Shown here one piece after another: positions 9,251 to 62,107 of a DNA stretch of 64,000 bases. Source of the stretch: Malacoraja senta. Lineage: Eukaryota. The notes beneath the pieces are model-generated. The model searched no databases. It saw nothing but the letters and a program-made list of their open reading frames with translations, and had not been told where the DNA came from. The stretch spans positions 271,188,001-271,252,000 of the forward strand of contig CM075977.1 in assembly GCA_038087875.1 (NCBI GenBank), in the 5' to 3' direction. The position numbers and the translations under genes were made by a program. Positions within the stretch are counted from its first letter, which is position 1; the number at the start of each line of letters is the position of its first letter.

Positions 9251-9672
9251 TAAACATGTAATTGGAGCAGAGGAATAATGGCACCCTTTGTGTTGGGCTA
9301 CATTTAGTTCATGGACCCAGGATGTATTCTGCAACATAACAGCATGATTTGTATTCTTCATAAGCTTGGTGCAATTGGTCGAGGCTTCTTTCCTAAGAAT
9401 GCCTTCAAAGGTGCATGATCTAGTCTGTATAGTCTAGTCTGTATAGTGCACAATTGAATGAGCCCGATATTGCTGGAAGTGTCAGCATTTTCTAAAGATG
9501 CTGAACTGAAATGCTGCTTTATGTGCCACAACAGCATTTGATGAACGGGAAGTTCTCCTGAAATTCTGGCCAATATTCATTTTCCAATCAGCACCATTAA
9601 ATGCAAGATGTGATCATTTAGCTCTTGTATTCGACATGAAAGTTGGTTGTGTGCAAAACGGCTGCCATGCTT

Positions 9673-10332
9673 TTTATTTTTATTTTTTATTTTTAATTTA
9701 AAAAAAAAAAATGTTTTAAAAAATTTAATTTTATTTATTAGAAGTATCTTTTAAAATAGTACCTTTTTACAGGTTCCCAGAATTATTAAAACATTCTATG
9801 TACAACTTCCTTTTTTTTAAAATTTTTTTTAGAAAGAAATGAGAAAGAAAGAAGTAGTGAAGAGTAAAGAAAAGTCTAGTGAGTGTGAAGTAAAGAAAAG
9901 AAATAAGTAAGAAAGTGAAGCCGAAAGGAGATTCTCCCTCGCCACGTCGATGCTTTTTTATGTTCTTAATCATTTTTCACCCAAACCTAGAATGTTTTAA
10001 TTATACAATACTATTGCACCACATGAATCCACAAGGTCAATAAATGGAGACCAACTCGTTAAGAATTGGTCTTGTTTATCTATTAGGAGGAGTCTCATTT
10101 CTTCCAAGTGGGCAGTTTCCAACATATTACCAATCCACATTTTGAGTGTTGGTATAGTAGCATTTTTCCAAAATTTAAGTATGAGTTTTTTTGCTGTTAT
10201 TAAACCACAATTAAAAAATGAAATTTGGGATATATTTAATTTGTTTCCATCTCCTATTACTCCGAAGATAATCATTTCCATATTAGGTTCCATTTTTATC
10301 TTAAATAAACTAGTAAATATATCATATATAGT
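9673..10332 (-). mobile_element. 5'-truncated L1-clade LINE with TSD
   Basis: ORF 9997-10293 is an L1 ORF2 C-terminus (AKKLILKFWK..IPTLKMW...WSPFID); T-rich tail complement near 9671-9700; 17-bp TSD aaac(g/a)gctgccatgctt at 9656-9672 / 10333-10349. Confidence 0.9.
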
Positions 10333-11034
10333 AAACAGCTGCCATGCTTGTCCACAAAAAAGTAAGGATTTTGTTTTAAAGTGTAATTTATTTCAAAACA
10401 GTGAAAAAGGTGGCATAAAGACACATATTTCTATTTTACTATTTCTACAACAATTCAGCCAGTACTGATTTGCGTGTGCTTTGCTACATACCGCTCTTCT
10501 CTGATCAAAAGCACCTAAGGGGTAGTGAAGAGTACTGTCGCTGGCACTCAGAAGAGAGGAGAGATGAGTATATTTTGCAGAACCAACAACCAGTAAGTAC
10601 AATCAGATGTTGTTCTGTTTTGTAGTGGTCAGATTTTTATAGACAAAGCACATGGAAATTATGGACACAGAAGATAGTTGATTGCTACGTTTCTGGAAAA
10701 AGTTAAGTTGAACAATACTGCCCTCAGATTCCATCAGTGCTGCCTGACATTCATGTTTGATTGCCTGCAAGTCTATAAAATAACATACCCAAACCATTGT
10801 TCTTATTAGGTAGGATGCCAAATAATGTTGAGGTAAAGTCTGACTTTGCCACAATATTGAAAATTGTCACCACATTATGAAAAATCCTGTATGTGGCAAG
10901 AAAACTGATTAAATTTGCATTTGAAATGAAAAAGATTTTGTTCAGGAGCATTTATCAGAAGACAAACCCATTTATTGAGAAAGAAAAATGAAAATCTGTT
11001 TTGTTTGTGTCACTCAAAACCTATTTGTAAAAAT

Positions 11035-13270
11035 ATTATTTTCAAGAGATACTCATCTAACAATATGAGACGTTTACTCAACATAATGCACTCACACAAA
11101 TCTGAAGAACAAGAATTATCAATTATTTCGCTGGATGCTGAAAAAGCATTTGACCAAGTAGAATGGAATTATATGGATAAAGTATTACAAAAATTCCAAC
11201 TGGGAGAGAATTTTATTCTATGGATTAAATGATTATATAATAAACCTACAGCTAGAATATTAACTAATAACATATTATCCTCAAAATTCCAACTATCAAG
11301 GGGAAATAGGCAAGGATGCTCATTATCACCACAGATGTTTGCTCTCATTATTGAACCGCTAGCAGAAAAAATTAGAATACACCCTGATATCCATGGGTAT
11401 AATACTAAAGATTCATATAATAAAATATCTTTATACGTGGATGATATATTACTGTACATTACAAAACCTCAAATCACTATACCAAATATATTAAATTGAA
11501 GACTTTGGATCTTTTTCTGGATATAGAATAAATTGGAATAAAAGTGAAATTATGTCAATAAAACCGAAAGATTCAACACATCTTTTAAAATTCCCTTTTA
11601 AAATAGCTACAGAAAAATTTAAATACTTGGGAATCGAAATTACTAGAACATATCAAGGTATGTTTAAGGCAAATTTTGATCCCCTACTTAATAAATTAAA
11701 CACACTAATTAAATTCTGGAAAACGCTCCCGATGTCTTTAATAGGCCGAATAAATGCAATAAAAATGATCTTTCTACCACAAATTTTATACCTATTTCAA
11801 TCGATTCCTATATACTTACCAAAGAAGTTTTTTTTTAAACTGCTCAGATATCACTAATTTTATTTGGGACTATAAATCACATAGAATACAAAAAACTCAC
11901 TTGAATAAATCTAAAGTATTAGGGGGGTTAGCACTACCTAATTTCATGTATTATTATTGGTCAGTAAATATTAAAAATATGATTCAACTGATGGATAACT
12001 CCGCCCAGCAAGTGGACTGGATTGTAATGGAGAAAGAGGATTGCTCTGGAAACATTGGAGCGATCCTCCTCTCACCAATGAAACTGAATAATATAAATTA
12101 TAATAAGAACCCAATTATTCATAGCACAATCCGAATTTGGAAACAAATAAAACAAAATTTAAAATTAAGAAATTTATCACTTTTATCACCCATAGTTAAT
12201 AACCCTTCGTTTAATCCCTCTATTATAGATACATCTTTTACACATTGGGATAGACTAGGAATTAAAATGTTCAGTGACTTGTATGAAACTGGAAAATTAC
12301 TTTCATTTCAACAATTACAAATAAAATATAAACTCGGAAATAATCAATATTTTAAATATTTTCAAATATGCGACTATTTGAAAAAATATACAAAAGATCA
12401 TTATAATAGCCCAGCAGATGTATTGGATGAGGCAATGCAGATAAAAGCTGAATCAGCAAACTTAATATTATATTTGTATAATATTATCTTAAATGTAGAA
12501 ATACCATCTATGGAGGGTATCAGAAGAGACTGGGAACAAGAGTTAGCTATTAAAATTTCAAAGGAAAGTTGGAATGAACACTTATTAAACGTGCATAAAT
12601 GTTCGATTAATGTAAGACACACTTTAATACAATTTAAAATTTTACATAGATTATATTATTCCCAAACTAAAATCCATTAAATTTTCCCAAATGTATCATC
12701 CATTTGTGATAAATGTCAATCCCAAGAAGCTACTATAGCGCACTCATTTGTTTTCTGTACAAAAATTCAAAAATTTTGGAATGAAATTTTCGAAATCTTT
12801 ACATAATTATTTAAAATAAAACTGATACCCAAAGCAGAATGGATTATCTTCGGAATAACGGAAGATGGTCCAGAACTAAATGTGTTTCAAAAGAAACTAA
12901 TAGACTATGGGTTAATAACTGGAAAAAAGCTAATCCTAAAATTTTGGAAGAAGGCTCCAATACCAACTATAAACATGTGGATTTCAAATATGTTCGAAAC
13001 ATTACTCCTAGAAGAGATAAGACTCCTCCTGGCAGGTAAACCAGATCACTTCCACCTGACGTGGTCTGCATTTATAGAATTATTACAAATATAGGGTGCA
13101 AAGGTAGCTTAAAAAAAATTGAGGTCAGGTAATGGGGGATGATGGAGAGTTGGTATGTCCCATTTGCGTAATGCTCATAAAAACTATTTGTTTCTTTCTT
13201 TTTCCTCTTTCTCTTTCTCCTTCTTTTCTAGGGTCTATTTCTTAACTCTTTCTCTTTTGTTTTTAATTTT
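11035..13270 (+). mobile_element. L1-clade LINE ORF2 (RT to C-terminal zinc knuckle), 5'-truncated and decayed
   Basis: SLDAEKAFDQVEW, RQGCSLSP, LYVDDILLY, FKYLGI, GRINAIKM..LPQILY, GGLALPNF, CDKC...AHSFVFC; pyrimidine-rich 3'UTR; stops and frameshifts. Confidence 0.93.
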
Positions 13271-13684
13271 GTTCCTATAAGGTCTTCATCAAATACTTCA
13301 GGCAAATGCTGTTTTTGGTTAAAATAATTAGCCTTCTGTGTAGTGTACTAATGGAATAGCGCCAAAGAGTGGAACTTCAAAATGAAAACTCTCTCATGCT
13401 AAGCAGCATCTTTAATCCTACTTGAAATTTTGGTCTGATGGTTCAAATCTACTCCTTGGAATTCAAGATATGAACAACAAGAAACAAAAAACGACTGTAA
13501 ATTGTATGTGAAGGCAAGAGGTATTGAATGGAGTAATGCATTTGCACAAGTCCAATGAATTGGATGGTCACTTTCTGTGATAAAATTTAGAAGATCCAAT
13601 CAGTATGCAAAGAGCAAGAAATAATTCAAGGAAAGAATGGGTCTATGAAAACTAGAAAGACAGCCCACGTGTAGAAACTGTGGA

Positions 13685-13822
13685 ATAAAAAGTAACTGCA
13701 GATGCTGGTTTATACCAAAAATCTTCTGGTGTGAAGAAGGGTCCCATCCCGAAACATCGCCTATCCATTTTCTCCAGAGATGCTGCCTGACCCACTGCAT
13801 TACTCCAGCATTTGTGTCTATC
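13685..13822. mobile_element. Short Penelope-derived fold-back insertion
   Basis: aactgcagatgctggttt (antisense tail) followed by sense gaagaagggt...cccgaaac...gtgtctatc. Confidence 0.75.
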
Positions 13823-27100: not shown

Positions 27101-28353
27101 TCTAAACACACTGTGTATTCCACGCAGCCCTGCTGCTCCCATAATGGACAGGGTAAGAACTTGCCAGGGAAGACCCGATAGATTTCTAGTTCATCGCCTT
27201 AACCACTATGTCACGACTATCAATTTGTTATGATTTCACATACTGATACGAAGGCCTCTCTTTTTGACGTTGTACACTATTATTTTGTGGTACATGTGAT
27301 AAACTAATTAACATTGTTGAGGATGTCAAAATTATTATTGGTATATTTTTCTGCTCCATAAAGTTTGGTTGAAATAATTATTTTACCGCCGCAGTAGTTT
27401 TATTTTTATTTTCAGGGACAACACGAGCATGATGAAAAATGAAGAGTACATCTTGGAGAGTGATACCTAATGTGTCAATTGGTTAAATTGCTACCTGACT
27501 AAAATGTAGACAAATTATGTTTTTATCGTGCTTGATCTCTTTTCTTTGAAGTCAATATTATAAGTGGATAATATTTGCTTCTTCACATTATCACTCGGGT
27601 TACATTTCACTAATTCACCAGTTTTTGTCCAAAGCAATTCACTTGGCATTGCAACATTTAAATGAAGCCACCACCTGAAAATAGGCAAGGAAATAGGTCT
27701 CAGGAGCTAATGGCAGCAGATCAAAATTTGCAGCAACCGAAGAATAGTAAATCAATAAAGCTATTGAAAAAGTGCCTCAGCATTAAAGTCGTATAGAGAA
27801 GAACACTTCATTTTGGAATCTATTTGATTTTTTTTCATTGGAATTTAATGAGCAGAAAATCAGATTGATTCTACAGTGATGGATCTGTTTTGCCCATGTG
27901 TTAAAGATGAAAATGTATCTGAAATTGGTTTTGAATTTTCCCTATTATTTTTATTCATTTTGGGGCCCATCCTCCCTTTAGCTACTTTTTGTCTCAGCAA
28001 AATATATTTTCTTGGGGAGGATATCTCATGGCTGCAGTGAACAGAAATGCAACCCTACTGTATGTGGGTTCTATGTGGTAGTGCTTATGATCAGTTCTGA
28101 GGGGTTATTTCCATCTTCACCATGCTGCCTGATTTACTGAGTATTCCCGCTTTTTTTGTTTTTTTTATTATGGAATTAATTTCTGTTGGACATTTTTTAA
28201 ACAAGTCAAAGTTTGTCCGTGCTGGACTTAGAGCTTCCCCTTATTAGTAAAATATATGATACTTTAGTGAAGGCCAGTGGAAAATATACAGTGCCCATCT
28301 TGGTGCTCCTCTGATACTGGAACCAAGTTGAATAATATATTTTTGACTGGTTA

Positions 28354-28708
28354 TGGCCCTGTCTCACGGTGCGAGTCCACCCACGAGTGATCCCGCAGTT
28401 TAAAACAAATCAAACTCGTGGTAATCACGTAGAATTAACGTAGCGGGAACGTCGGAACTCGTAACACTAACGGCAGGTACTCGCGAAACTTGTTAACTCG
28501 TGAAAATCTTTCAACATGATGAAAGATTTCCACGAGTCAAATTTACTCTTGAAGTAAAAATGTTAAACTTTTAAACTCGTTGTAAGAACGTAGTAGCCCG
28601 TGAATTTACCGTAGTGACTCGTGAGTCTACCGTGGGCACTCTTTAACTCAGCGGGACAGGCAGCATCGCTGGAGAGAAGGAATGGGTGACGGGATGACGT
28701 TTATAAAA
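28354..28708 (+). mobile_element. Left end of a PIF/Harbinger-type element, same family as 43409-46181
   Basis: TTA + tggccctgtctcacggtgcgag; colinear with 43409 to about 43780; no right TIR found. Confidence 0.85.
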
Positions 28709-41337: not shown

Positions 41338-42800
41338 TGACACAACTAGCTTTCTTATTCACTAGAATGTGCCAGAATTTTGACAGGGAGGAGAACTGAA
41401 CGGTGCAAACTATGATTAAACAAAACTTGTCTTCCTTTGTGACTGTCTGGCAGTGCATGACAGATATGTCTTAAAAGACCACGGTGCTCATTATTATTGA
41501 AGTCTACAGCTGTGAGGGAAAATTACTTTATAATTTCTGAAAATCTGCAACTTGTCTGTCAATAGCTGGCTCACAGCCAGGCTGTGAATGTGCAAATTAT
41601 GGTTCAGTTTTCTGATGGGAAAACTGAACATAGAGTAATCCGGGGCAGACTACAGTAAGTACATACAAAGGTTTTAATAATGCAGCATTCTTGAAAAGGA
41701 AGGATTTAAGATCAGTGCATTTTTTAAACAGTTGATTGGATGGGCAGATTAAGGACGAAGGATAAAGGGAGATGGAAAATAAAGTGTACACATGGGATTA
41801 GAAATACTTATCATGGGGATGGTATATACCAAATGGAATTGTTTTGCGGTTACATTTTCATCATAATTATATGAAAATGGTAAAGTTGATACGCTGTACT
41901 TTGGTGGTTTGGTTTACAGCCAGTTGTAGGCTGATAGATACATCCATCTGTAACCTGGATCCTTGCTGTAACTCATTTTCTTGGATGGAAACAACTTCTG
42001 TGAGGTCGAAATCTACCCATTTATTTCTCTGGACCATGATGAGTGACTGCTTTGAATTTTCATTTGTCATCTGTTCACCAGTTAAGAGCTGTTTAATGCA
42101 TGTTGACAAACAGGATGCAGGCCATCTCAAGGTAACAAACGGGTTCCATTGTTACGGACGTCCATGAGGATTTTGTCCATGAGCCGGAATATACATAGAA
42201 ATTGCTCGATATGGTAACCATACCTCTACAGTATTTTAATGAATTGCTTCAAAAGCACATTACTGATCATTACTGATCAAATACTAAAAGTGGAGAAAGA
42301 GAGGAAACTAGTTTTGCCATTTGTAGGAATATACTTCGGATTTTAGAAGTTAATAATATTATGGGATCTCACTCATAAGTTGTGGTGTTCATAAGTTGAG
42401 AATTCATAACCCAGGGACGACCTGCAATACTAAAAACATTGGTCACATTTACATGGGGATGGGCTGCTATCCCTTTAACATCCTAGGACATAAAATGTTC
42501 TTGATTAGTATGGGTGTCAGAGGTTATGAGGAGAAGGCAGGAGAATAGGGTTAGGAGGGGGAGATAGATCAGTCATGGTGGAGTAGATTTGTTGGGCCAA
42601 ATGGCCTAATTCTGCTCCTATCACATGATCTGAGAAGGTTACTTTCAGTTAATGGGACACTAGCCAGTGCAAGGATCTGTTATTTTCAAATTTTATTGAA
42701 GATAAATTGAAAATGTATTTATAATAATCAGCGAATTAATAGAGAACTAATTAACAATTTGCTTGAAAGCCCTCTGCTGAGGAATTTAGTGATACTGTAA

Positions 42801-43405
42801 AGGCTCTGTCTTACCTGTTTGCGGTCATCGGCGGTGAAGCGCGGCGTCGCCGGTAGCGAGGACCGCGCGGCAACGACGAGAGCGTCGAGCCTATCCACCG
42901 GAGCGCCGCACGGATGCTGCGCGGGGGCCGAGTTAATTCAAACACGGCGGGTCCCACGTGCTTGCGGTAAGTAAAAAAAAGGGCGGGCCGACTGCGATGA
43001 CGTCGGCCCGCCGCACGTGACTCACCAGCGGCGGCTGTGGCGGCGGCCATCCTGATCGCGGCGCTGTAGCGGTGGCTGTGCCTGCGGCCGTGCAGCACAC
43101 GTGCCTCACTGGCGGCGGCACGTGCCTCACTGGCGGAGGCTGTGGCAGTAGAGGTTTGACGCACGGCGCTCGAGCCACACTGGCGGCGGCCCGTGCGGGC
43201 GGCCGTGCCGCACTTGTGCATCACTGGTGGAGGTTGTGCGGTGAGTATATGGTTTTCGACATTGTCAATTTTATTTTAGCACCGCGCGGTGTTGGGAACA
43301 CCGCCGCACGGCCCGGGAATTGTACTTTCTCACGAGTGCGCGGTCTATGGCGGCAGATTGTTCCCGTTTCGCCACCAATGACCGCAGACTCGTGAGACAG
43401 GCCTT
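42801..43405. mobile_element. CpG-rich PIF/Harbinger-type MITE (element A)
   Basis: 41-bp imperfect TIRs (30/41 match) aggctctgtcttac...gcggtcat / atgaccgc...gtgagacaggcctt; TAA at 42798-42800 and 43406-43408. Confidence 0.78.
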
Positions 43406-43989
43406 TAAAACCCCTGTCTCACTGTGCGAGCTGACCCACGAGGTACCCCGAGTTTAAAACAAATTTAACTCGTGGTAATCACGTACAATTAACGTAGCGG
43501 GAACGTCGGAACTCGTGGACGCAACTTAGCGACTCTTGGCGCTAACGGCAGGTACCCGTGAAACTTATTAACTCTTGAAAAAGTTCAAACATGTTTAAAC
43601 TTTTCCACGAGTAAAATGTACTCTTGTGGTTAAAAATGGAAACATTTAAATACGTTGTAAGAACATAGTGGCCCGTGTGTTTACCTTAGTGACTCGTGAG
43701 ACTACCGTGGGAACTCTTTAACTCAGCGGGCAGGCAGCATCTCTGGAGAGAAGGAATGGGTGATGGGATGACATTTCTAAATTGGGGGGGAGTGGGGGGT
43801 TGGAGCAGGGAGGGAGGGGGTGGGGGTGGAGGAGAGAGGGTGGAGAGTGGAGGGAGAGGAGGGGGAGACAGATGAGGGTGTCGTCATTCACTAGCGGCGG
43901 GTGCCGGTCACTGAAACAGGCAGGTGAGATTTCACATCCACCTTGTGTGTGTGTGTGTGTCTCTCTCTCCCTCCCTTCCTCTCACACAG

Positions 43990-44916
43990 ACTGAGATAGC
44001 ACCGATGGAGAACGCCGGAGTTCCCCCTCATCCACAGATCCAGTTTGGCAGAGGTCCCTTGGAGGAGGACGATCGGGCAATCAGTCCCGATAGCAACACA
44101 CAAGCCCCCACTTGGAAAACCATGACACAACCCCCAGCGACCAGTCCAGGCACCAGCCCGAACCCTACCTTACTAGCTATCAAGAGACCTACAGAAAGTC
44201 CACCCCAAATTATCTACTCTTCAACATATACTCCAACCACTATCCAGCCTACCAGCCAGCTCCACAAGACTGTTCGTGGAAAGATCCCTTGGCTTTTCGG
44301 GTTCAATAGTCAAAGGGATGTACTCCGGAGGCTTCGGAAACCCATGAAGGGTACCGGGCCTAAAATTGTAACTCACAGGACGTTCGTTCTGACCAAGCCA
44401 ACTCTCCAAGATGTGGTGACCTCAGTGCCAATGGTAGAACCCACGGTATTCCCTCTCACCACCCCACGTACCCAAGACACCACCACCGGACAAACCACGC
44501 GGATTCCCATTACCTCTGCCGGCGAGATTACAAGGACCATCCTCCCATCTACCATTGAAACGGCGGCGGTCACTACAGAGACCATCCCTATCACAGTCAC
44601 CACTACCCGGGCAACTCTCACCACCAGACAACGGGCGTTCTTCCGGCGCAGGGGACCGGGAAAGCCCTTCGGTAGAATCAAGAGGCGAGCGTTCTTTTCG
44701 AGGCCCACCTCCGGACGGAATCGCTCGGTGGCGTCGGCGGCTGAGAACAGGAAGACAATACTAGACACGATAAAAACTAGATTGGCCGTGACTCCGACTG
44801 TCCCAGTAACCACCAAAGCGCCTCTTCCTGTTGCAGTAGAGACCAGCACTTGGAACATTGGTGCGCACTGGAGACGTTACCCTTACTCCAGCTTAAATTT
44901 ATTACGTCGTTATTAA
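43990..44916 (+). CDS. Thr/Pro-rich mucin-like ORF or exon, candidate captured fragment of an IGSF10-like gene
   Basis: Open for 308 codons after a polypyrimidine tract + CAG acceptor (43989); in-frame ATG at 44005; RGKIPWLFGFNSQRDVLRRLRKP and RRRGPGKPFGRIKRR motifs resemble, from memory, the IGSF10 central region; lies between the TIRs. Confidence 0.55.
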   Translation, partial: TEIAPMENAGVPPHPQIQFGRGPLEEDDRAISPDSNTQAPTWKTMTQPPATSPGTSPNPTLLAIKRPTESPPQIIYSSTYTPTTIQPTSQLHKTVRGKIPWLFGFNSQRDVLRRLRKPMKGTGPKIVTHRTFVLTKPTLQDVVTSVPMVEPTVFPLTTPRTQDTTTGQTTRIPITSAGEITRTILPSTIETAAVTTETIPITVTTTRATLTTRQRAFFRRRGPGKPFGRIKRRAFFSRPTSGRNRSVASAAENRKTILDTIKTRLAVTPTVPVTTKAPLPVAVETSTWNIGAHWRRYPYSSLNLLRRY

Positions 44917-45844
44917 CGGCCAGTATTTGAAAGGTTATCCTTTAAATGAAATAGTTATTGCCATTCCTAAAGGCTTTTGCGAAAACTTAAACCGTGGTTT
45001 ATTATTAAGATACTTGAGAATGTTGTTTCATTAACAAATGCTCCTGCAGTTACTGAGATCAATTTAAAAACACAATTTAAAAACACAGTGGATTTATTTC
45101 TAAAAAAAACCCGTTATTCATAAAAAGATGTACAGGATATGCAATACACCAATGCCATGTGTAATTTTAAAAATAATCTTTCTCCTGAATAAAATATGTA
45201 TAAAACAAAAACCGTGCAAAATCTTTTCATCGATTCTCAGTGGTTAATGCCTTCGGTATTTTTCTAAAATAAACTTTACTCAGAATAAGAAATGTGCACA
45301 AAACAAAAACAGTGCAATGCATTATCAGTGTCTATACATTCAATAGTGTCAGGACTGTTTCCATCTATATTTAAACAAAACTCTCTTGTTGCTATGTGCC
45401 CCTTGGGGTGATATCCCTACCCTTGTCTGACGGGTGTCCCCATTTCAATATCGTGCAGCGGAAGGGCCATAGACTGTGGTCCAAATGAACTGCATGTAAA
45501 TGCAATGCAGATACAAATATTCTGCGTCTGTGTCTGCCATTTCCGTCTTTATGCCTTTCATGTCACAATTGCCAGTTCAATGGGTAATTCGGCTTAATTC
45601 AGATTTTATATGCGGATGCGAATAGTTTAATTATAAAGTGTAAATTCTATTAAATATGTTACAGGGAAAAACGTCCAGCAATGAAAAGACATCCCTGTAT
45701 TTAAATAGCGCCCATCACAAACTCAGGAGGTTCCAACGTCTATTACAGTAAAGGAAGTACAGTGAACGTACTTGGATAAACATAATGTTGAGCATGAATA
45801 TTGTTTTGTTTAAAAACGATGGTAACAAGGCTTGTAAATATGCA

Positions 45845-45940
45845 AAGGCAGACAAAAAATGCTGGAGAAACTCAGCGGGTGAGGCAGCACCTACGGAGAG
45901 AAGAGATATGCGACGTTTCGGGTCGAAACCCTTCTTCAGT
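45845..45940 (-). mobile_element. Short Penelope-derived fragment inside element B
   Basis: gacaaaaaatgctggagaaactcagcggg...cgtttcgggtcgaaacccttcttcag. Confidence 0.8.
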
Positions 45941-46304
45941 CACTGTTGCTTATTAAAACAGACCTTCATTCACATTTGGCTCAAGAGTACCTCGGGAGAG
46001 GAACGTGATAACTCGGGAGACGATCTTGGAACATCGCAGAAATGACAGTTAATGGCAAACTTGAGTCATACCCGTGTGAACTCGGTTAAACTCTTGATCA
46101 TACACTTGGAATCTCGTGCACAACCACGAGTCTTTCGCTCGGGGTACCTCGTGGGTCAGCTCGCACAGTGTGACAGGGCTTTAAGCGCAGGGCATGTTTG
46201 CCGCCAAACAGGTCCCACATTCTTAATACTGCTTCATTGTGCAAAGCAAATCATTGAGACTGAGGCTGGGGCAAGTGTGGTAATCTGCGAGGAAACTGTC
46301 AGCT

Positions 46305-48100
46305 GTTGGAAGGATGTAGATAGGGTGGTCAAAAAGGCTTTTGGCTTATTGGCCTTCATCAGTCAAAGTATTGAGTATAGAAGATAGACACAAAATGCTG
46401 GAGCAAGGTATCTCTCCAGACATGCTGAGTTACTTCAGCATTTTGTGTCTATCTTCAATTTAAACCAGCATCTGCAGTTCCTTCCTACATATTGAGTATA
46501 GAAGTTGGGAGGTAATGCTGCAGTTATACAAGACATTGGTGAAGCTGCATTTCGAGTATTGTATCCAGTTCTGGGCACCAGGTTATAGGAAAGATGTTGT
46601 CCAAGTTGGAAAGGGTGCAGAGAAACTTTACAAGGATGTTGCCAGGACTCGAGGGTCTGAGTTATAGGGAGAAATTGAGCAGGCTTGAAGACTATTCCCT
46701 GGAGCGCAAGAGGATGAGGGGTGATCTTATAGAAGCGTATAAAATCATGAGAGGAATAGATCGGGCAATAGATGCACAGAGTTCTTGCCCCAACATAGGA
46801 GAATCAAGTACCAGAGGGCAAAGTAACATTAGCAAATTCAAAGTAACATTAGCAAATTTGCAGATGACACAAAGCTGGGTGGCAGTGTGAACTGTGAGGA
46901 GGATGCTATGAGAATGCAGGGTGACTTGGACAGGTTGGGTGAGTGGGCAGATGCATGGCAGATGCAGTTTAATGTGGATAAATGTGAGGTTATACACTTT
47001 GGTAGCAAAAACAGGAAGGCAGATTACTATCTAAGTGGTAGTAATTCCCAACTGATGGTAGTCAAGTTGGGAAAAGGGGAAGTACAACGGGATCTGGGGG
47101 TCCTTGTTCATCAGTCAATGAAAGTAAGCATGCAGGTACAGCAGGCAGTGAAGAAAGCGAATGGCATGTGGGCCTTTATAACAAGAGGAGTTGAGTATAG
47201 GAGCAAAGAGGTCCTTCTGCAGTTGTATAGGACCCTAGTAAGACCACACCTGGAGTATTGTGTGTAGTTTTGGTCCCCTAATTTGAGGAAGGACATTCTT
47301 ACTATTGGGGGAGTGCAGCGTAGGTTTACAAGGTTAATTCCCGGGATGGCGGAACTGTAATATGCTGAGAGAATGGAGCGGCTGGGCTTGTATACTCTGG
47401 AGTTTAGAAGGATGAGAGGGTATCTTATTGAAACATATAAGATTATTAAGGGTTTGGACACACTAGAGGCAGGAAACATGTTTCCGATGTTGGGGGAGTC
47501 CAGAACCAGGGGCCACAGTTTAAGAATAAGGGGAAAGCCATTTAGAACGGAGACGAGGAAACACGTTTTCTCACAGAGAATTGTAAGTCTGTGGAATTCT
47601 CTGCCTCAGAGGGCGGTGGAGGCCGGTTCTCTGGATACTTTCAAGAGAGAGCTAGATAGGGCTCTTAAAGATAGCAGAATCAGGGGATATGGGGAGAAGG
47701 CAGGAACGGGGTACTGATTGGGGATGATCAGCCATGATCACATTGAATGGCGGTGCTGGCTCGAAGGGCCGAATGGCCTACACCTGCACCTATTGTTTAT
47801 TGACTATTGGCATAGGTTTAGGATGAAGGGGGAAAGATTTGTAGGAATCTGTGGGGTAACTTTTACGTACAAAGGTTGGTGGGTGCATGGAACGAGCTGC
47901 CAGAGGAGGTATTTGAGGCAGGGACTATTACAACATTTAAGAAGCAATTAGACAGGTACATGGATACTTACTTGGATAGGACTGATTTAGAGGGATATGG
48001 GCCAAACGCCGGCAAGTGGGATGTGTAGATGGGACATGTTGGTTAGTGTGGGCATGTTGAGCCGAAGGGCCTGTTTCAACGCTGTATAAATTTATGTATT
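46305..48100 (+). mobile_element. Nested CR1 LINEs: older CR1 interrupted by a younger CR1 (46821-47809) and a Penelope-derived insert (46384-46489)
   Basis: Older copy breaks at ccagagggca and resumes at gcataggtttagg; inner copy has LVRPHLEYCV and a full 3' tail; Penelope insert TSD tattgagtatagaag 46369-46383 / 46490-46504. Confidence 0.88.
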
Positions 48101-49497: not shown

Positions 49498-49969
49498 GCT
49501 AAACACACTGTTTGTACAGTATCTTTTGCATGTCTTTGCTTGTACTACTGTCTGTATACAACAGTCCATCAGTGAGTTTGCACATGTTGATGAAAGGTGT
49601 TTATCTGCAGCAGAGAAAGTTGCAAAGAATTGGTTCAATCGCCTATGCTTCTTTTCATGATGAGAAATAAATCTGAAGAAATGGTATTCAGGTTGATGAT
49701 GGTCGCAACACTAGGACTGTACTCCTGGCCCTAACATCTTCTTATGATATAAGCTGGAAGTGACAGTTCTTGTTCCAACTCTCCAGGCTGTTGCAATCTG
49801 CCAGCTTGATTTGCCAAGTGGACACATTTAATCAAACTCAAAATTCAGGGTCCACATGCGGGATTAGCTGACCAAACGTTTTTCTCAGTAATGATGAGCA
49901 TGAAACCACTGGATCGTCATTACGTATTCCATCTGGTTTAATAATATCCTCGGAAATAAATCCACCTTC

Positions 49970-50129
49970 NNNNNNNNNNNNNNNNNNNNNNNNNNNNNNN
50001 NNNNNNNNNNNNNNNNNNNNNNNNNNNNNNNNNNNNNNNNNNNNNNNNNNNNNNNNNNNNNNNNNNNNNNNNNNNNNNNNNNNNNNNNNNNNNNNNNNNN
50101 NNNNNNNNNNNNNNNNNNNNNNNNNNNNN
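49970..50129. other. Assembly gap (160 N)
   Basis: Run of N, followed by (TA)n and poly-G low complexity. Confidence 0.99.
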
Positions 50130-50825
50130 GAAGGTGGATTTATATATGTATATATATATATATATATATATAAGGTGGGGGGGGGGGGGGAAATATATAT
50201 ATATAGATAAATATATATATATAATGATTCCAAATGCAGAATAGAGTGGTTGACTTATAACTGCCTTTTGAAATGCTTAATAAGGATTCATATCCGCTAC
50301 ATTAAAGCGGAAAATGGATAAATCCAGATAGACCACCCAACATTGACTTAAGCATCAAATTTGGATAAAGCAAGATTGCAAAGACCTCCTCATAAATTTC
50401 AGGTGTCTAAATTGAGAAAGCTGTCAGGGGCATGCCAGGAACACTTGACTTCAGACCTGATTCCTAAGGAATTTGTTAAATGTTGCAGGATAAATGGAAC
50501 ATGGGAAGTAGAGATAAAGCACAACCATCTGTATTTCAGCCTTACCTAACTTTCTGCAACATCACTCTGAATATATTCTGATACTGATGATGATGCTCTG
50601 TTGAAATGTCTGATGTGGGCAAATGGATTACTCAGCTTCCCACATCCATGCTGTATGACATCTGATCTAAATTTCACAGTGAGAACATTTTGTTTCAAAG
50701 CATGCGTTGTCATGGAAATACCTTCCTCTTCCAGGGTAATAAAGAATTGTTATGCCACATTATTGGGCTATTAAATAATGGAACAAACTTAAAAGGAATC
50801 CCAAGACAGAGTGTGATATTTGGTA

Positions 50826-51439: not shown

Positions 51440-52960
51440 TGTTGACATCATCCTTTTTTCAAAACTCTTTAGATTCTGGAGTAGTTCCTGAGGACTGGAG
51501 GGTAGCTAATGTAACCCCACTTTTTAAAATTGGAGGGAGAGAGAAAACGGGGAATTACAGACCAGTTAGTCTAACATCGGTGGAGGGGAAAATTCTGGAG
51601 TCAGTTATTAAAGATGGGATAGCAGCACATTTGGAAAGTGGTGAATTCATTGGACAAAGTCAGCATGGATTTATGAAAGGTAAATCATGTCTGATGAACC
51701 TTATAGAATTTTTCGAGGATGTAACTAGTAGAGTGGATAAGGGAGAACCAGTGGATGTGTTATATCTGGACTTTCAGAAGGCTTTCGACAAGGTCCCATA
51801 TAAGAGATTAGTATGCAAACTTAAAGCACAAGGTATTGGGGGTTCAGTATTGATGTGGATAGAGAACTGGCTGGCAGACAGGAAGCAAAGAGTAGGAGTA
51901 AACGGGTCCTTTTCAGAATGGCAGGCAGTGACTAGTGGGGTACCGCAAGGCTCAGTGCTGGGACCCCAGCTATTTAGAATATATATTAATGATCTGGATG
52001 AGGGAATTGAATGCAACATCTCCATGCGGATGACACGAAGCTGGGGGGCAGTGTTAGCTGTGAGGAGGATGCTAGGAGGCTGCAAGGTGACTTGGATAGG
52101 TTGGGTGAGTGGGCAAATGCATGGCAGATGCAGTATAATGTGGATAAATGTGAGGTTATCCACTTTGATGGCAAAAACAGGAAAGTAGACTATTATCTGA
52201 ATGGTGGCCGATTAGGAAAAGGGGAGATCCAACGAGACCTGGGTGTCATGGTACACCAGTCATTGAAAGTAGGCATGCAGGTGCAGCAGGCAGTGAAGAA
52301 AGCAAATGGTATATCAGCATTCATAGCAAAAGGGTTTGAGTATAAGAGCAGGGAGGTTCTACTGCAGTTGTACAGGGTCTTGGTGAGACCACACCTGGAG
52401 TATTGCATATAGTTTTGGTCTCCTAATCTGAGGAAAGACATTCTTGCCATAGAGGGAGTACAGAGAAGGTTCACCAGACTGATTCCTGGGATGTCAGGAC
52501 TTTCATATGAAGAAAGACTGGATAGACTCGGCTTGTACACGCTAGAATTTAGAAGATTGAGGGGAGATCTTATAGAAACTTACAAAATTCTTAAGGGGTT
52601 GGACAGGCTAGATGCAGGAAGATTATTCCCGATGTTGGGGAAGTCCAGAACTAGGGGTCACAGTTTAAGGATAAGAGGGAAGTCTTTTAGGACCGAGATG
52701 AGAAAATCATTTTTTACACAGAGAGTTGTGAATCTGTGGAATTCTCTGCCACAGAAGGTAGTTGAGGCCAGTTCATTGGCTATATTTAAGAGGGAGTTAG
52801 ATGTGGCCCTTGTGGCTAAAGGGGTCAGGGGGTATGGAGAGAAGGCAGGGATGGGATACTGAGTTGGATGATCAGCCATGATCATATCGAATGGCGGTGC
52901 AGGTTCGAAGGGCCGAATGGCCTACTCCTGCACCTATTTTCTATGTTTCTATGTTTCTAT
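51440..52960 (+). mobile_element. CR1 (HER1-like) LINE 3' 1.5 kb, relatively young
   Basis: 249-aa ORF with [47 protein letters not shown]; complete 3'UTR and (ttctatgt)n tail. Confidence 0.95.
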
Positions 52961-59639: not shown

Positions 59640-60695
59640 AGAGTCGTCAGCATTGCAGTTGAGGTGCTGAAGGTCCTGACGCGTATGAAGGTAGACAATT
59701 CTCCTGGGCCTGTTCAGATATTTGAGGACACTGTGGGAAGCTAGAGAGGAAATTGCGGGAGCTGTGGCTGAGATTTATGAGTCGACATTAAATGGAGGCG
59801 AGGTGCCGGATGACTGGAAGGTGGAAAATGTAGTGCCTATATTCAAGAAAGGTTGCAGGGAAAGGGCTGGGAACTACACGCCAGTGAGATTAACATCGGT
59901 GTTTGGAAAATCACCACAGAGTATTCTAATGGATAGGATATGCATGCACTTGGATGGGCAATGGATGATTAGGGATAGTCAGCATGGATATGTACATGGG
60001 AGGTCTCTTCTCACAAATCCGATTGAGTTTTTTGATGAAGTGACCAGAAAGGTTCATAAAGGCAGAGTTATAGACATTGCATATGTAGATTTCAGTATGC
60101 CATACCCCAAGATTCAATATGGTAGGCTGCTCTGGAAGGTTAGATCCTTTGGGAGCGCTGAATGGATAGAAAATTGGCTTTAGGGAAGGAAGCAGAGAGT
60201 GATGGTGGAAGGTAGCTTTTCGGACTGGAGACCTATGACTTGTGGTGTGCCTCAGGGTTTGGTGCTGGGCCCATTGCTGTTTGTCATCTATATCAATGAT
60301 TTGGATGAGAACATATATGGCATGGTTAGCAAGTTTGCAGATTACACTAAAGTGGGTGGTATTGTAGATAGTGAAGATGATTGTCAAAAATTACAGCAGG
60401 ATCTTGATCGGTTGGGCAGGTGGGCTGAGGAATGGTTGTTGGAATTTAATGCTGAGAAATGTGAGGCATTGCATTTTGGAAGACTAACATGCGCAGGATT
60501 TATATAGTGAATGGTAGGGTTCTGGAGAGTGTTGTAACGCAATGTTTAAGAAGCATTTAGTCACGTAGCTGGATAGGACAGGTTTAGAGGGATATTGGCC
60601 AAATGCAGGCACGTGGGACCAGTGTAGATGGGACAGGTTGGCTGGTGTGGGTAAGTGGGCTGAAGGGCCTGTTTGCACTCTGTATGATTCTATAT
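59640..60695 (+). mobile_element. CR1 LINE fragment with internal deletion
   Basis: EVPDDWKVENVVPIFKKG, GVPQGLVLGPLLFVIYINDLD, SKFADYTK. Confidence 0.9.
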
Positions 60696-61299
60696 TGAAG
60701 CCATACATTTGAAAAGTGAGCAGGTATTAAAACATTTTTCTTATTTCACGACTCAGAATGCCGCATATCCTGAACATTTTATTTCATGAAAAAAGATTTC
60801 CCACTTGAAACATTTAAAAAAAAATGATTATTGAAATTGTGTTTTAACACCTGGAATGTTAGAAATTATAACTTTGTAATATTATATCAGAAAGGAGACA
60901 CAGAAAACAGACAGGATAGGAGGTAAGCCTGCATGCTCAAGTCAGCTGGGGAGGAGGAGTGTGACATTTCTTGTTAAATGAAAGAGAAGGCACAATTGTG
61001 GCTGGGGTGTGATTCTGAAAGAGGTGACCTGGTCAGCCACCAGAAGCTGTCTCTCGAAGATAGACACAAAATGCTGGAGTAACTCACCGGGACAGGCAGC
61101 ATCTCTGGAGGGAAGGAATGGGTGACATTTCGGGTCGAGACCCTTCTTCAGCCTGATGTCAGGGGAGAGGACGGTACAGAGATAAAATGTAGTTGGAGAC
61201 AGTAAGACTGGTCAGATAACTGGGAAGGGGGAGGGGACGGAGAAAGAGGGGATGCAAGGGCTACTTGAAGTTAAAGTCAATGTTCATACCGCTGGGGTG

Positions 61300-62107
61300 T
61301 AGAGCAGAGGGAGCTAGGAATGCAGGTACCTAGTTTGTTGAAAGTGGCATCACAGGTAGATAGGGTGGTCAAAAAGGCTTTTGGCACACTAGTCTTCATC
61401 AGTCAATTGAGTATAGAAGTTGGGAGGTCATGTTGCAGTTATAAAAAACATTAGTGAGGCCACATTTAGAGTATTGTTTAAGAAAGAACTGCAGATGCTA
61501 GAAAAATTGAAGGTGGACAAAATGTACTGGAGAAACTCAACGGGTGAGGCAGCATCCATGGAGAGAAAGAGTTGGCGACGTTTCGGGTCCAGACCCTTCT
61601 TCAGACCTTTAGATTATTCTTTAGTATTGTGTTCAGTTTTAGGCACAATGTTATAGGAAAGATGTTGTGAAGCTTTAAAGGGTGCAGAGAAGATTTACGA
61701 GGATGTTGCCAGGACTCAAGGGCCTGAGCCATATGGAGAGGTTGAGGAGGCTAGGACTTTATTCCTTGAAGCACAGGTGGATGAGGGGTGATCTTATAGA
61801 GGTGCACAAAATCATGAGAAGAATAGATTGGGTAGGTGCACAGAGTCTCTTGGCCAGAGTAGGGGAATCAAGGACCAGAGAAGCAAGAACGAATCTGTGG
61901 AATTCTCTGCCACAGAAGGAAGTGGAGGCCAATTCACTGGATGTTTTTAAGAGAGAGTTAGATTTAGCTCTTAGGGCTAAAGGAATCAAGGGATATGGTG
62001 AAAAAGCAAGAACTGATTTTAGATGATCAGCCATGATTAGATTGAATGGCAGTGCTGGCTTGAAGGGCCGAATGGCCTACTCCTGCACATATTTTCTATG
62101 TTTCTAT
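61300..62107 (+). mobile_element. CR1 3' fragments (two subfamilies joined) with Penelope-derived insert (about 61476-61606)
   Basis: QRRFTRMLPGL...RGDLIEV; switch of subfamily near 61880. Confidence 0.8.

Follow-up and report, generated by a model that had tools for sequence, protein, structure and literature searches.

In plants, the capture of gene fragments by cut-and-paste transposons shuffles exons at large scale. Capture in animals is thought to be rare and small, to involve mainly hAT and Mariner elements and to be nearly always single-copy; in the animal Pack-TIR catalog (Tan et al. 2021, Nat Commun 12:4280, PMC8277862), 87% of elements are hAT or Tc/Mariner, the median capture is 224 bp and 4 of 370 are multicopy. 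We analyzed a 64,000-nt stretch of DNA from the skate Malacoraja senta (hereafter, the window). At positions 43409–46181 it holds what is very likely a non-autonomous PIF/Harbinger-type transposon of the Pack-TIR kind with a mosaic IGSF10 cargo, whose long open frame would be a passive passenger.

Architecture of the element

The element spans ∼2.8 kb (2.77 kb) and is bounded by terminal inverted repeats (TIRs) whose arms (43408–43452 and 46138–46182) are 45 nt long and 96% complementary, with 2 mismatches. An earlier, sequence-only reading of this DNA had picked out these repeats, their two mismatches and the enclosing TAAs, and holds up except for its arm length of 44 nt. The 31-nt TIR core occurs at just two sites in the 64 kb, which are the two TIRs (chance expectation 0.00), and across the window these are the only TIRs of this kind that face each other. 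TAA adjoins each TIR (43406–43408 and 46182–46184), the target-site duplication of PIF/Harbinger elements. The termini, of the type GGCCCTGT..., we take to resemble published PIF or Tourist-like termini, and AACCCCTGTCTCAC, AAGCCCTGTCACAC and TGGCCCTGTCTCAC are common to the copies, again as in PIF/Harbinger. Harbinger-type elements always insert at TAA or TTA, and the matching TAAs by themselves are therefore uninformative as to a single insertion event. Both the putative assignment to PIF/Harbinger and the apparent exact borders of the cargo, as given in the following feature list, are read from the structure of the element alone.

42801–43405, no strand: neighboring MITE 'A', GC-rich and Harbinger-type, which belongs to another family, has related termini (AGGCTCTGTCTTAC / AGGCCTGTCTCAC) and adjoins the shared TAA
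43406–43408: TAA target-site duplication on the left side; the same TAA follows neighboring element A
43409–43452, plus strand: left TIR, from alignment and the count of core occurrences
43409–43782, plus strand: left arm, non-autonomous Harbinger-type family, with eight copies of the subterminal motif ACTCKKG
43719–43765: 47-nt stretch within the left arm that resembles an abundant skate repeat
43783–43977, plus strand: G-rich low-complexity stretch, then a (GT)n(CT)n tract, at repeat-level depth
43915–44913, plus strand: 333-codon stop-free frame, which extends past the IGSF10 homology by 21 codons at its upstream end and by 10 at its downstream end
43978–44883, plus strand: putatively captured 906-bp stretch from inside the IGSF10 giant exon, corresponding to A. 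radiata residues 1073–1376
44882–45194, no strand: cargo piece 2, AT-rich, non-coding, on a separate contig in Leucoraja-like runs
45197–45845, no strand: cargo piece 3, AT-rich, non-coding, on a separate contig in Leucoraja-like runs
45846–45942, plus strand: one copy of the abundant skate repeat
45943–46181, plus strand: right arm with four ACTCKKG motifs, including the right TIR (46138–46181)
46182–46184, no strand: right TAA, exactly at which the contigs of organisms B and C begin to match the window

The ACTCKKG motif reaches a density of 21.9 per kb in both arms, against 0.4 per kb elsewhere and none in the cargo, and read depth over the arms is 10^4–10^5 in all four sequencing runs, versus 5–16 for single-copy DNA. 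High-copy arms that carry the motif thus enclose a low-copy cargo devoid of it, which is the arrangement of a Pack-TIR with internal non-transposon sequence. A second copy of the family lies at 28354–28705 of the window, preceded by TTA (28351–28353); it is 80% identical to the left arm, and the homology extends through 43782. When the arms were compared by sensitive BLASTN with the remainder of the window and with 68 kb from two skate IGSF10 loci, the search recovered only this diverged left arm, no right arm and no full copy lacking cargo. Apparent joints of 43749–43764 to 45910–45915 were considered as cargo-less elements and rejected, both places holding partial or whole copies of the abundant repeat. 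The stretch at 43783–43977 is of uncertain origin, and part of it may derive from the family; its final CCTCTCACACAG overlaps with the native CCTCCCACACAG, a microhomology at the left junction.

Pfam searches returned zero domains for the 333-codon ORF and for eight other ORFs inside or beside the element, from which we conclude, in agreement with the sequence-only reading, that no transposase or Myb/SANT gene lies inside. No autonomous partner (a PF13359-like DDE transposase together with a Myb/SANT-like protein) was found in the 64-kb window.

A fragment of the IGSF10 giant exon

The resemblance to IGSF10 had been proposed from sequence motifs, and database searches bear it out: among 1.84 billion protein representatives, the sole real match was IGSF10 of Hypanus sabinus (E 1.7e-35). 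The translated fragment shares 88% protein identity with residues 1073–1376 (of 2570) of Amblyraja radiata IGSF10, and the DNA of 43978–44883 is 92.5% identical to the IGSF10 giant exon of A. radiata and 91.8% identical to that of Leucoraja erinacea. The IGSF10 identity of this piece of cargo is proven, and the predicted parental copy is unambiguous, namely the giant exon in two related skates, as is characteristic of Pack-TIRs. That exon measures 4.2 kb (9626–13804 of locus L001), and the captured piece is internal to it; the homology breaks off abruptly inside the exon at both ends, so that only 906 bp of the 22-kb gene are represented. Both indels in the fragment, a 6-bp deletion and a 9-bp insertion, are in frame, a slight lean toward constraint.

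The 64-kb window contains no other IGSF10 exon, LRR and Ig exons included, and hence not the architecture of a functional IGSF10. Native IGSF10 sits on a chromosome of 56–62 Mb in two skates, and the window lies more than 139 Mb into its own sequence. Since the LRR and Ig exons are missing and the chromosome does not fit that of the native gene, we interpret the locus, as first suggested, as a transposon-borne fragment and not the host locus. Other searches with the ORF gave noise in the PDB (bS21, E 0.05 or worse), mucin-like low-complexity neighbors only in the ESM Atlas (0.77), and no similar predicted protein at 170–540 aa in a word-index protein search. Rfam analysis of 42000–47500 gave three sub-threshold miRNA-like matches, which we read as chance.

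A mosaic cargo at a site empty in Leucoraja-like skates

In runs X3 and X4 (Leucoraja-like DNA), the IGSF10 piece, piece 2, piece 3 and the right flank occur on four different contigs, with breaks at 44882/44883, 45194/45197 and 46182. Piece 2 resides there on a 1.5-kb contig whose sequences on both sides are unlike the window, and piece 3 on a separate contig of 675–685 nt, in which the skate repeat of 45846–45942 is contiguous with piece 3 up to 45872–45879. Within the element, piece 2 and the IGSF10 piece are linked by a 2-nt overlap (CT). The cargo is therefore a mosaic, as judged from contig structure, of apparently at least two unlinked sources. The sequence-only reading had described capture by a Harbinger element of an IGSF10 segment; the capture is borne out, but the cargo is not IGSF10 alone. 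Pieces 2 and 3 may share one common parent locus, with an indel between them there; sensitive BLASTN found no match to such a parent in the 64-kb window or in 68 kb of two skate IGSF10 loci.

Contigs from organisms B and C match the window from the right TAA onward, and their left 195–206 nt fit nothing in 43200–46400. The letters of B and C show four of four Leucoraja-specific states and none that are Amblyraja-specific. Because the match to the right flank starts exactly at TAA, the site is empty in these Leucoraja-like species, an outcome that the sequence-only reading had named as a check. The comparison demonstrates insertion of the element at a TAA, with Leucoraja-like skates as the reference. 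Because these contigs part from the window at the outer edge of the TIR, with no match to the interior in their remaining half, that interior is not resident DNA, and the scenario of two independent TIR insertions around such DNA, raised beforehand as a refutation, was not borne out.

A second version of the chimeric junction

A 963-nt contig in run X1 (organism A) spans the junction between IGSF10 and piece 2 by 56 nt. It retains the 9-bp insertion and carries the ancestral GGGATA. The contig and the window differ at 15 positions, and the X1 contig has the native state at 14 of these, an asymmetry of 14:1. Relative to this second version, the window copy has 14 private changes, half of them at CpG (7 of 14 substitutions, read from the alignment), plus the 6-bp deletion. 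In run X2, one contig terminates precisely at 44883, so that a second context is implied at that position. Depth in X1 and X2 is 0 on the single-copy right flank, and no separate native IGSF10 contig was seen. Such a pattern is expected of neither plain same-species DNA nor a simple ortholog, and the second version could therefore stem from RNA of another copy, from a diverged ortholog or from a family consensus. Estimation of copy number from depth was discarded as unreliable; the X1 single-copy depth of 2.3 gives ∼18 copies, compared with ∼2 from scaling by arm depth.

The open frame evolves neutrally

Across the six reading frames of the window, no open stretch is longer than that at 43915–44913, as originally noted, and its full extent is 333 codons; shuffling the element 300 times gave a mean of 111, with 240 as the maximum. 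Among 308 of its residues, 55 are Thr, 36 Pro and 30 Arg. We obtained dN/dS values of 0.55–0.83 for the copy, versus 0.60 for the native gene between two skates, and the window-private changes comprise 4 synonymous and 9 non-synonymous substitutions. In neutral simulations the frame was still open in 31% of cases after 41 substitutions. We see neutral drift in the copy and no indication of function. It remains open because it is only a few percent diverged and because Thr/Pro-rich codons seldom mutate to stops. The coding segment had been termed intact; this is correct insofar as the frame is open, but because it evolves neutrally, intactness is not evidence of function, and a long open frame in a transposon is by itself no such evidence either.

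Origin and mobility of the loaded element

Two family-specific arms of ∼370 and ∼240 bp with 45-nt TIRs flank ∼2.2 kb of foreign DNA. Besides the low-complexity stretch and the 906-bp segment from the middle of the IGSF10 giant exon, this DNA includes ∼1 kb of AT-rich non-coding sequence that comes from one or more further loci. The cargo was presumably copied into a plain element via template switching during break repair or at a stalled fork, by a gap-filling or FoSTeST type of mechanism steered by short microhomologies. We consider it probable that the loaded element was then moved in trans by a Harbinger transposase and a Myb-like partner and occupies more than one locus. That it belongs to a multicopy, recurrently gene-capturing skate Harbinger lineage, with loaded elements on several chromosomes and other host fragments likewise captured, is a tentative proposal. 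Alternatively, a plain MITE broke and was repaired in situ with IGSF10 and other DNA, never moved and is single-copy, in which case the organism A version would be orthologous or allelic. Such filling is the usual origin of animal Pack-TIRs, 4 of 370 of which are multicopy (PMC8277862); it accounts equally well for the junction microhomology, and the empty site of organisms B and C is compatible with both models. However, 15 differences with a 14:1 asymmetry are unexpected between orthologs or alleles, X1 and X2 have no depth on the single-copy right flank, and the X2 contig that ends at 44883 implies a second context; on balance we regard gap filling without later movement as unlikely, though a serious competitor to mobilization.

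The remaining explanations are far less probable. We speculated that the frame could be an exapted IGSF10-linker module under selection, perhaps spliced via the acceptor-like CT tract and a GT at 44872. Its status as the longest open frame in the window, the two in-frame indels, the acceptor-like and donor-like borders and the notable depth of the related copy in X1 and X2 (expression, if the runs are RNA) would suit a functional exon. The dN/dS is nevertheless not below that of the native linker, the private changes are mostly non-synonymous and reflect CpG decay, nearly a third of neutral simulations stay open, the frame has neither a Pfam domain nor a similar predicted protein of 170–540 aa, and the 'acceptor' CACACAG is native exon sequence, which makes a new gene here highly improbable. 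No more credible is that two unrelated truncated MITE ends happen to surround resident DNA or a segmental duplication, or that the assembly is chimeric: any Harbinger insertion would be expected to have a TAA at either side, which does not tie the ends together, and the BLASTN search recovered no full-length cargo-less copy, but the ends are the only facing pair in the window and 96% alike, both arms share a motif absent from the cargo, the B and C contigs leave the window precisely where the outer TIR edge lies, and a public run independently contains the chimeric junction at 44883. Finally, the high similarity to IGSF10 might suggest the native locus or a decayed pseudogene of it, a reading that is practically untenable with 906 bp of a 22-kb gene, homology that stops abruptly within a 4.2-kb exon, and a chromosome that does not fit. 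We therefore retain the loaded Harbinger-type transposon as the best explanation.

Comparison with known systems

Like Tourist-like and other PIF/Harbinger MITEs, the element has a 3-bp TAA/TTA duplication, short subterminal repeats, no coding capacity and arms in thousands of copies; ordinary MITEs, in contrast, are a few hundred bp long and have no host gene sequence, whereas this element is 2.77 kb and holds a host exon fragment. It shares with animal Pack-TIRs the structure of a non-autonomous TIR transposon whose two ends enclose non-transposon host sequence, an identifiable parental copy elsewhere, junction microhomology of a few bases, an exonic fragment and probably interchromosomal copying. 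It differs in the size of the capture (a 906-bp exon fragment within a ∼2.2-kb mosaic, versus a median of 224 bp) and in the hint of more than one copy, compared with 4 of 370. Capture by TIR elements had been thought little described in vertebrates; Pack-TIRs already document such capture (PMC8277862), which makes the kind a known one. The terms 'Harbinger', 'PIF' and 'Shark' do not occur in the main text of that paper, and literature searches for capture by Harbinger elements in sharks or skates turned up no relevant report. The skate element is thus of a known kind that is not described for cartilaginous fish in the papers found. It extends gene-fragment capture to Harbinger elements and to cartilaginous fish, in a well-documented case with an identified parental exon, an empty site in a related genus and a mosaic cargo, and its large exon fragment supplies copy-specific markers for mobility, transcription and small-RNA silencing of the parent gene.

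With the Pack-MULEs of rice and the plant Pack-TYPE (CACTA) elements (PMC5861414, PMC8903248), the skate element shares a mosaic from unlinked loci between TIRs and a captured coding frame that, as is often the case there, is open yet non-functional. The plant elements belong to other superfamilies, with other TIRs and target duplications of 9–10 bp or 3 bp of any sequence, and number thousands per genome with mobilization shown, whereas the skate element is one locus in the window. If the reading of multicopy, recurrent capture is true, cartilaginous fish would provide the first vertebrate counterpart of rice Pack-MULE activity.

An IGSF10 exon fragment between Harbinger-type ends

The studied element (43409-46181) has TAA immediately outside each end, and the 31-nt core of its terminal inverted repeats (TIRs) occurs at only these two sites in the 64-kb window (0.00 matches expected by chance). 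Harbinger-type elements insert only at TAA/TTA, so a matching TAA pair alone is no proof of one insertion joining both ends.

Borders and open frame
43408-43452 and 46138-46182: terminal inverted repeats, 45 nt, 96% complementary
43915-44913: stop-free frame, 333 codons, the longest among all six frames of the window

In shuffles of the element the longest open frame averaged 111 codons and reached at most 240, against the 333 present. Pfam found no domain in this frame nor in eight other ORFs in or beside the element. The TIRs, TAA and long frame described in the sequence-only reading are all there, as judged by TIR comparison, six-frame ORF count and Pfam.

A HMMER search of 1.84 billion representative proteins returned one real match to the frame (E 1.7e-35), a 2556-aa protein with LRR and twelve Ig matches, named by its sources as IGSF10 of the stingray Hypanus sabinus; its matching region was used as the query to find the skate orthologs. 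Aligned over 307 residues, the frame shares 88% identity with Amblyraja radiata IGSF10 (residues 1073-1376), and 43978-44883 is 92.5% identical to positions 12119-13021 of the native A. radiata locus (L001) and 91.8% identical to 12086-12988 of the native Leucoraja erinacea locus (L002), the two loci being about 96.5% alike. The L001 counterpart lies inside a single large exon (9626-13804, encoding residues 245-1637). Homology stops abruptly on both sides, with the native exon running on for hundreds of codons each way; tblastn and blastn of the window detected no further part of IGSF10; and the native IGSF10 chromosomes measure 62 Mb (A. radiata) and 56 Mb (L. erinacea), the window lying >139 Mb into its sequence. 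The matching stretch is therefore an internal exon fragment away from the gene, which bears out the earlier proposal of an IGSF10-like frame, borne as a fragment outside the host locus.

The carrier family and neighboring repeats

The ACTCKKG motif is present eight times in the left arm (43409-43782) and four times in the right arm (45943-46181), or 21.9 per kb, and is absent from the cargo, with 0.4 per kb in the remaining window. Together with these subterminal repeats, the termini and the 3-bp TAA/TTA duplication fit a putative PIF/Harbinger-type MITE. Summed depth over the arms reaches 10^4-10^5 in public runs versus 5-16 for single-copy sequence, which indicates thousands of copies.

Repeats related to the element
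28354-28705: second left-arm copy, 80% identical, adjoining TTA upstream, homology through 43782
42801-43405: element A, a GC-rich, repeat-structured Harbinger-type MITE of a different family with related termini, abutting the same TAA
43719-43765, 45846-45942, 46381-46455 and many sites in L001 and L002: abundant skate repeat (…AATGCTGGAGAAACTCAGCGGG…GGCAGCATCT…CGTTTCGGGTCGA.ACCCTTCTTCAG)

Because homology with the second left-arm copy extends through 43782, the 47 nt at 43719-43765, which resemble the abundant skate repeat, are part of the family, which makes 43783 the earliest possible start of the cargo. After 28705 that copy continues into different sequence, with the right arm absent nearby; it is either truncated or has another interior. 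In every run the abundant repeat reaches millions in summed depth. Since its 47-nt part is built into the family's left arm and a whole copy ends the cargo, it may have offered homology for template switches.

Element A looks like a lineage-specific expansion, as its family has a depth of 10^5-10^6 in organism A and its segment 43200-43306 has a depth of 0 in the Leucoraja-like runs. Decayed LINE reverse-transcriptase fragments (with motifs such as …LVRPHLEYC…) are found at 10-2200, 46590-47720, 51440-52860 and 59700-62030, and the right flank of the studied element lies within one such old LINE copy that has an ortholog in the Leucoraja-like runs. At 49838-50233, inside a simple-repeat region, there is a stretch of N (160 such letters in the window).

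An empty site and a mosaic cargo

Two public runs, X3 and X4 (from the Leucoraja-like organisms B and C), look like whole-genome DNA, their single-copy depth being even at about 5 and 16, and in the IGSF10 piece they carry four of four Leucoraja-specific states and none that is specific to Amblyraja. Both have the IGSF10 piece on the contig of the native gene (4705 nt long in X3), with the match stopping at 44883; 44882-45194 (piece 2) sits on a 1.5-kb contig unlike the window on either side, and 45197-45879 on another separate contig. The right flank, 46182-46360, is on contigs of 386-390 nt that start to match at precisely the T of TAA; their other 195-206 nt have no fit within 43200-46400. 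The whole interior is thus an insertion relative to Leucoraja-like skates, in which the site is empty, and the cargo combines DNA of at least two unlinked origins. An empty TAA site in related species had been proposed as something to look for, and these contigs supply it. The element is accordingly a TIR-bounded insertion at TAA whose cargo is a host-derived mosaic with an IGSF10 exon fragment in it.

Piece 2 and piece 3 (45197-45845) may derive from a single locus in which an indel separates them; neither turned up within 10 kb of the A. radiata IGSF10 gene or within 3 kb of the L. erinacea one. There is microhomology at the junctions: 2 nt are shared by the IGSF10 piece and piece 2, and the left junction has CACACAG and more in common with the native exon. 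Microhomology is a trace left by template switching (PMC8277862).

A second version of the loaded element

Two public runs of organism A, X1 and X2, contain fractions of 0.52-0.59 of the sampled cargo words. A 963-nt contig of X1 covers 43992-44939 and crosses the IGSF10/piece-2 junction by 56 nt with no mismatch there. It retains the 9-bp insertion that sets the cargo apart from all native genes seen, and has the GGGATA that the window copy lost. Fifteen substitutions separate contig and window, 14 with X1 in the native state and one its own; by eye, CpG transitions make up seven of the 14 window-private changes. This 14:1 asymmetry suggests that the contig is a family consensus or a less decayed copy, other than the window locus. 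One X2 contig ends exactly at 44883, which points to a second context there; site 44067 has two letters in X2, and X1 and X2 differ at 44585.

In X1 and X2 the single-copy right flank has zero depth and native IGSF10 has no contig of its own, a pattern unlike ordinary same-species DNA; it could be explained either by RNA from another copy or by contigs that had collapsed to a consensus. Copy-number estimates from depth varied with the assumptions made, from about 2 up to about 18 or more, and were not relied on. Overall, we consider it fairly probable that the loaded element occupies more than one locus.

Selection on the open frame

The fragment has 41 window-unique, 8 Amblyraja-unique and 15 Leucoraja-unique sites.

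dN/dS of the fragment (Nei-Gojobori)
Window vs A. radiata: 0.55
Window vs L. erinacea: 0.83
A. radiata vs L. erinacea native genes: 0.60

Constraint on the native linker is itself weak, and on the copy it is no greater than on the native gene. Between A. radiata and L. erinacea the linker exon diverges nearly as quickly as the whole locus with its introns (3.05% versus about 3.5%), and with the native dN/dS this part of the IGSF10 protein is under weak constraint only. Window-private changes are 4 synonymous and 9 non-synonymous. Codons one step from a stop number 65 of 295, and the native fragment stays open in 31% of trials with 41 random substitutions and in 69% with 13. Neither indel of the fragment shifts the frame, a mildly unexpected result; the 9-bp insertion may be older than the capture. 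The CACACAG that resembles a splice acceptor belongs to the native exon.

Given a dN/dS level with the native gene, the 4:9 private changes and simulated frames that often stay open, we conclude that the frame is young, stop-poor passenger sequence in neutral decay, with no evidence of a working gene. The coding segment earlier called intact is indeed stop-free over 333 codons, but the dN/dS values (0.55-0.83) and simulations speak against reading this as the sign of a working gene.

Loading mechanism and comparison with known Pack-TIRs

We propose that a plain family member broke, by excision or at a stalled fork, and that repair synthesis would have switched templates to ectopic loci and then back to the element, as in the gap-filling or FoSTeST models of PMC8277862; the loaded element was afterwards probably mobilized in trans. 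Alternatively, a plain element inserted first and was loaded in place, which we think less likely.

A survey of 100 animal genomes found 370 Pack-TIRs, of which 87% are hAT or Tc/Mariner; the median length of captured sequence was 224 bp, 13.4% included exonic sequence and only four were multicopy (PMC8277862). Neither Harbinger-based capture nor any cartilaginous-fish case was found in the main text of that paper or in the literature searched. The IGSF10-loaded element belongs to the already documented Pack-TIR kind and its mechanism is not new; it stands out by superfamily, host lineage, exon-fragment size and a hint of multiple copies.
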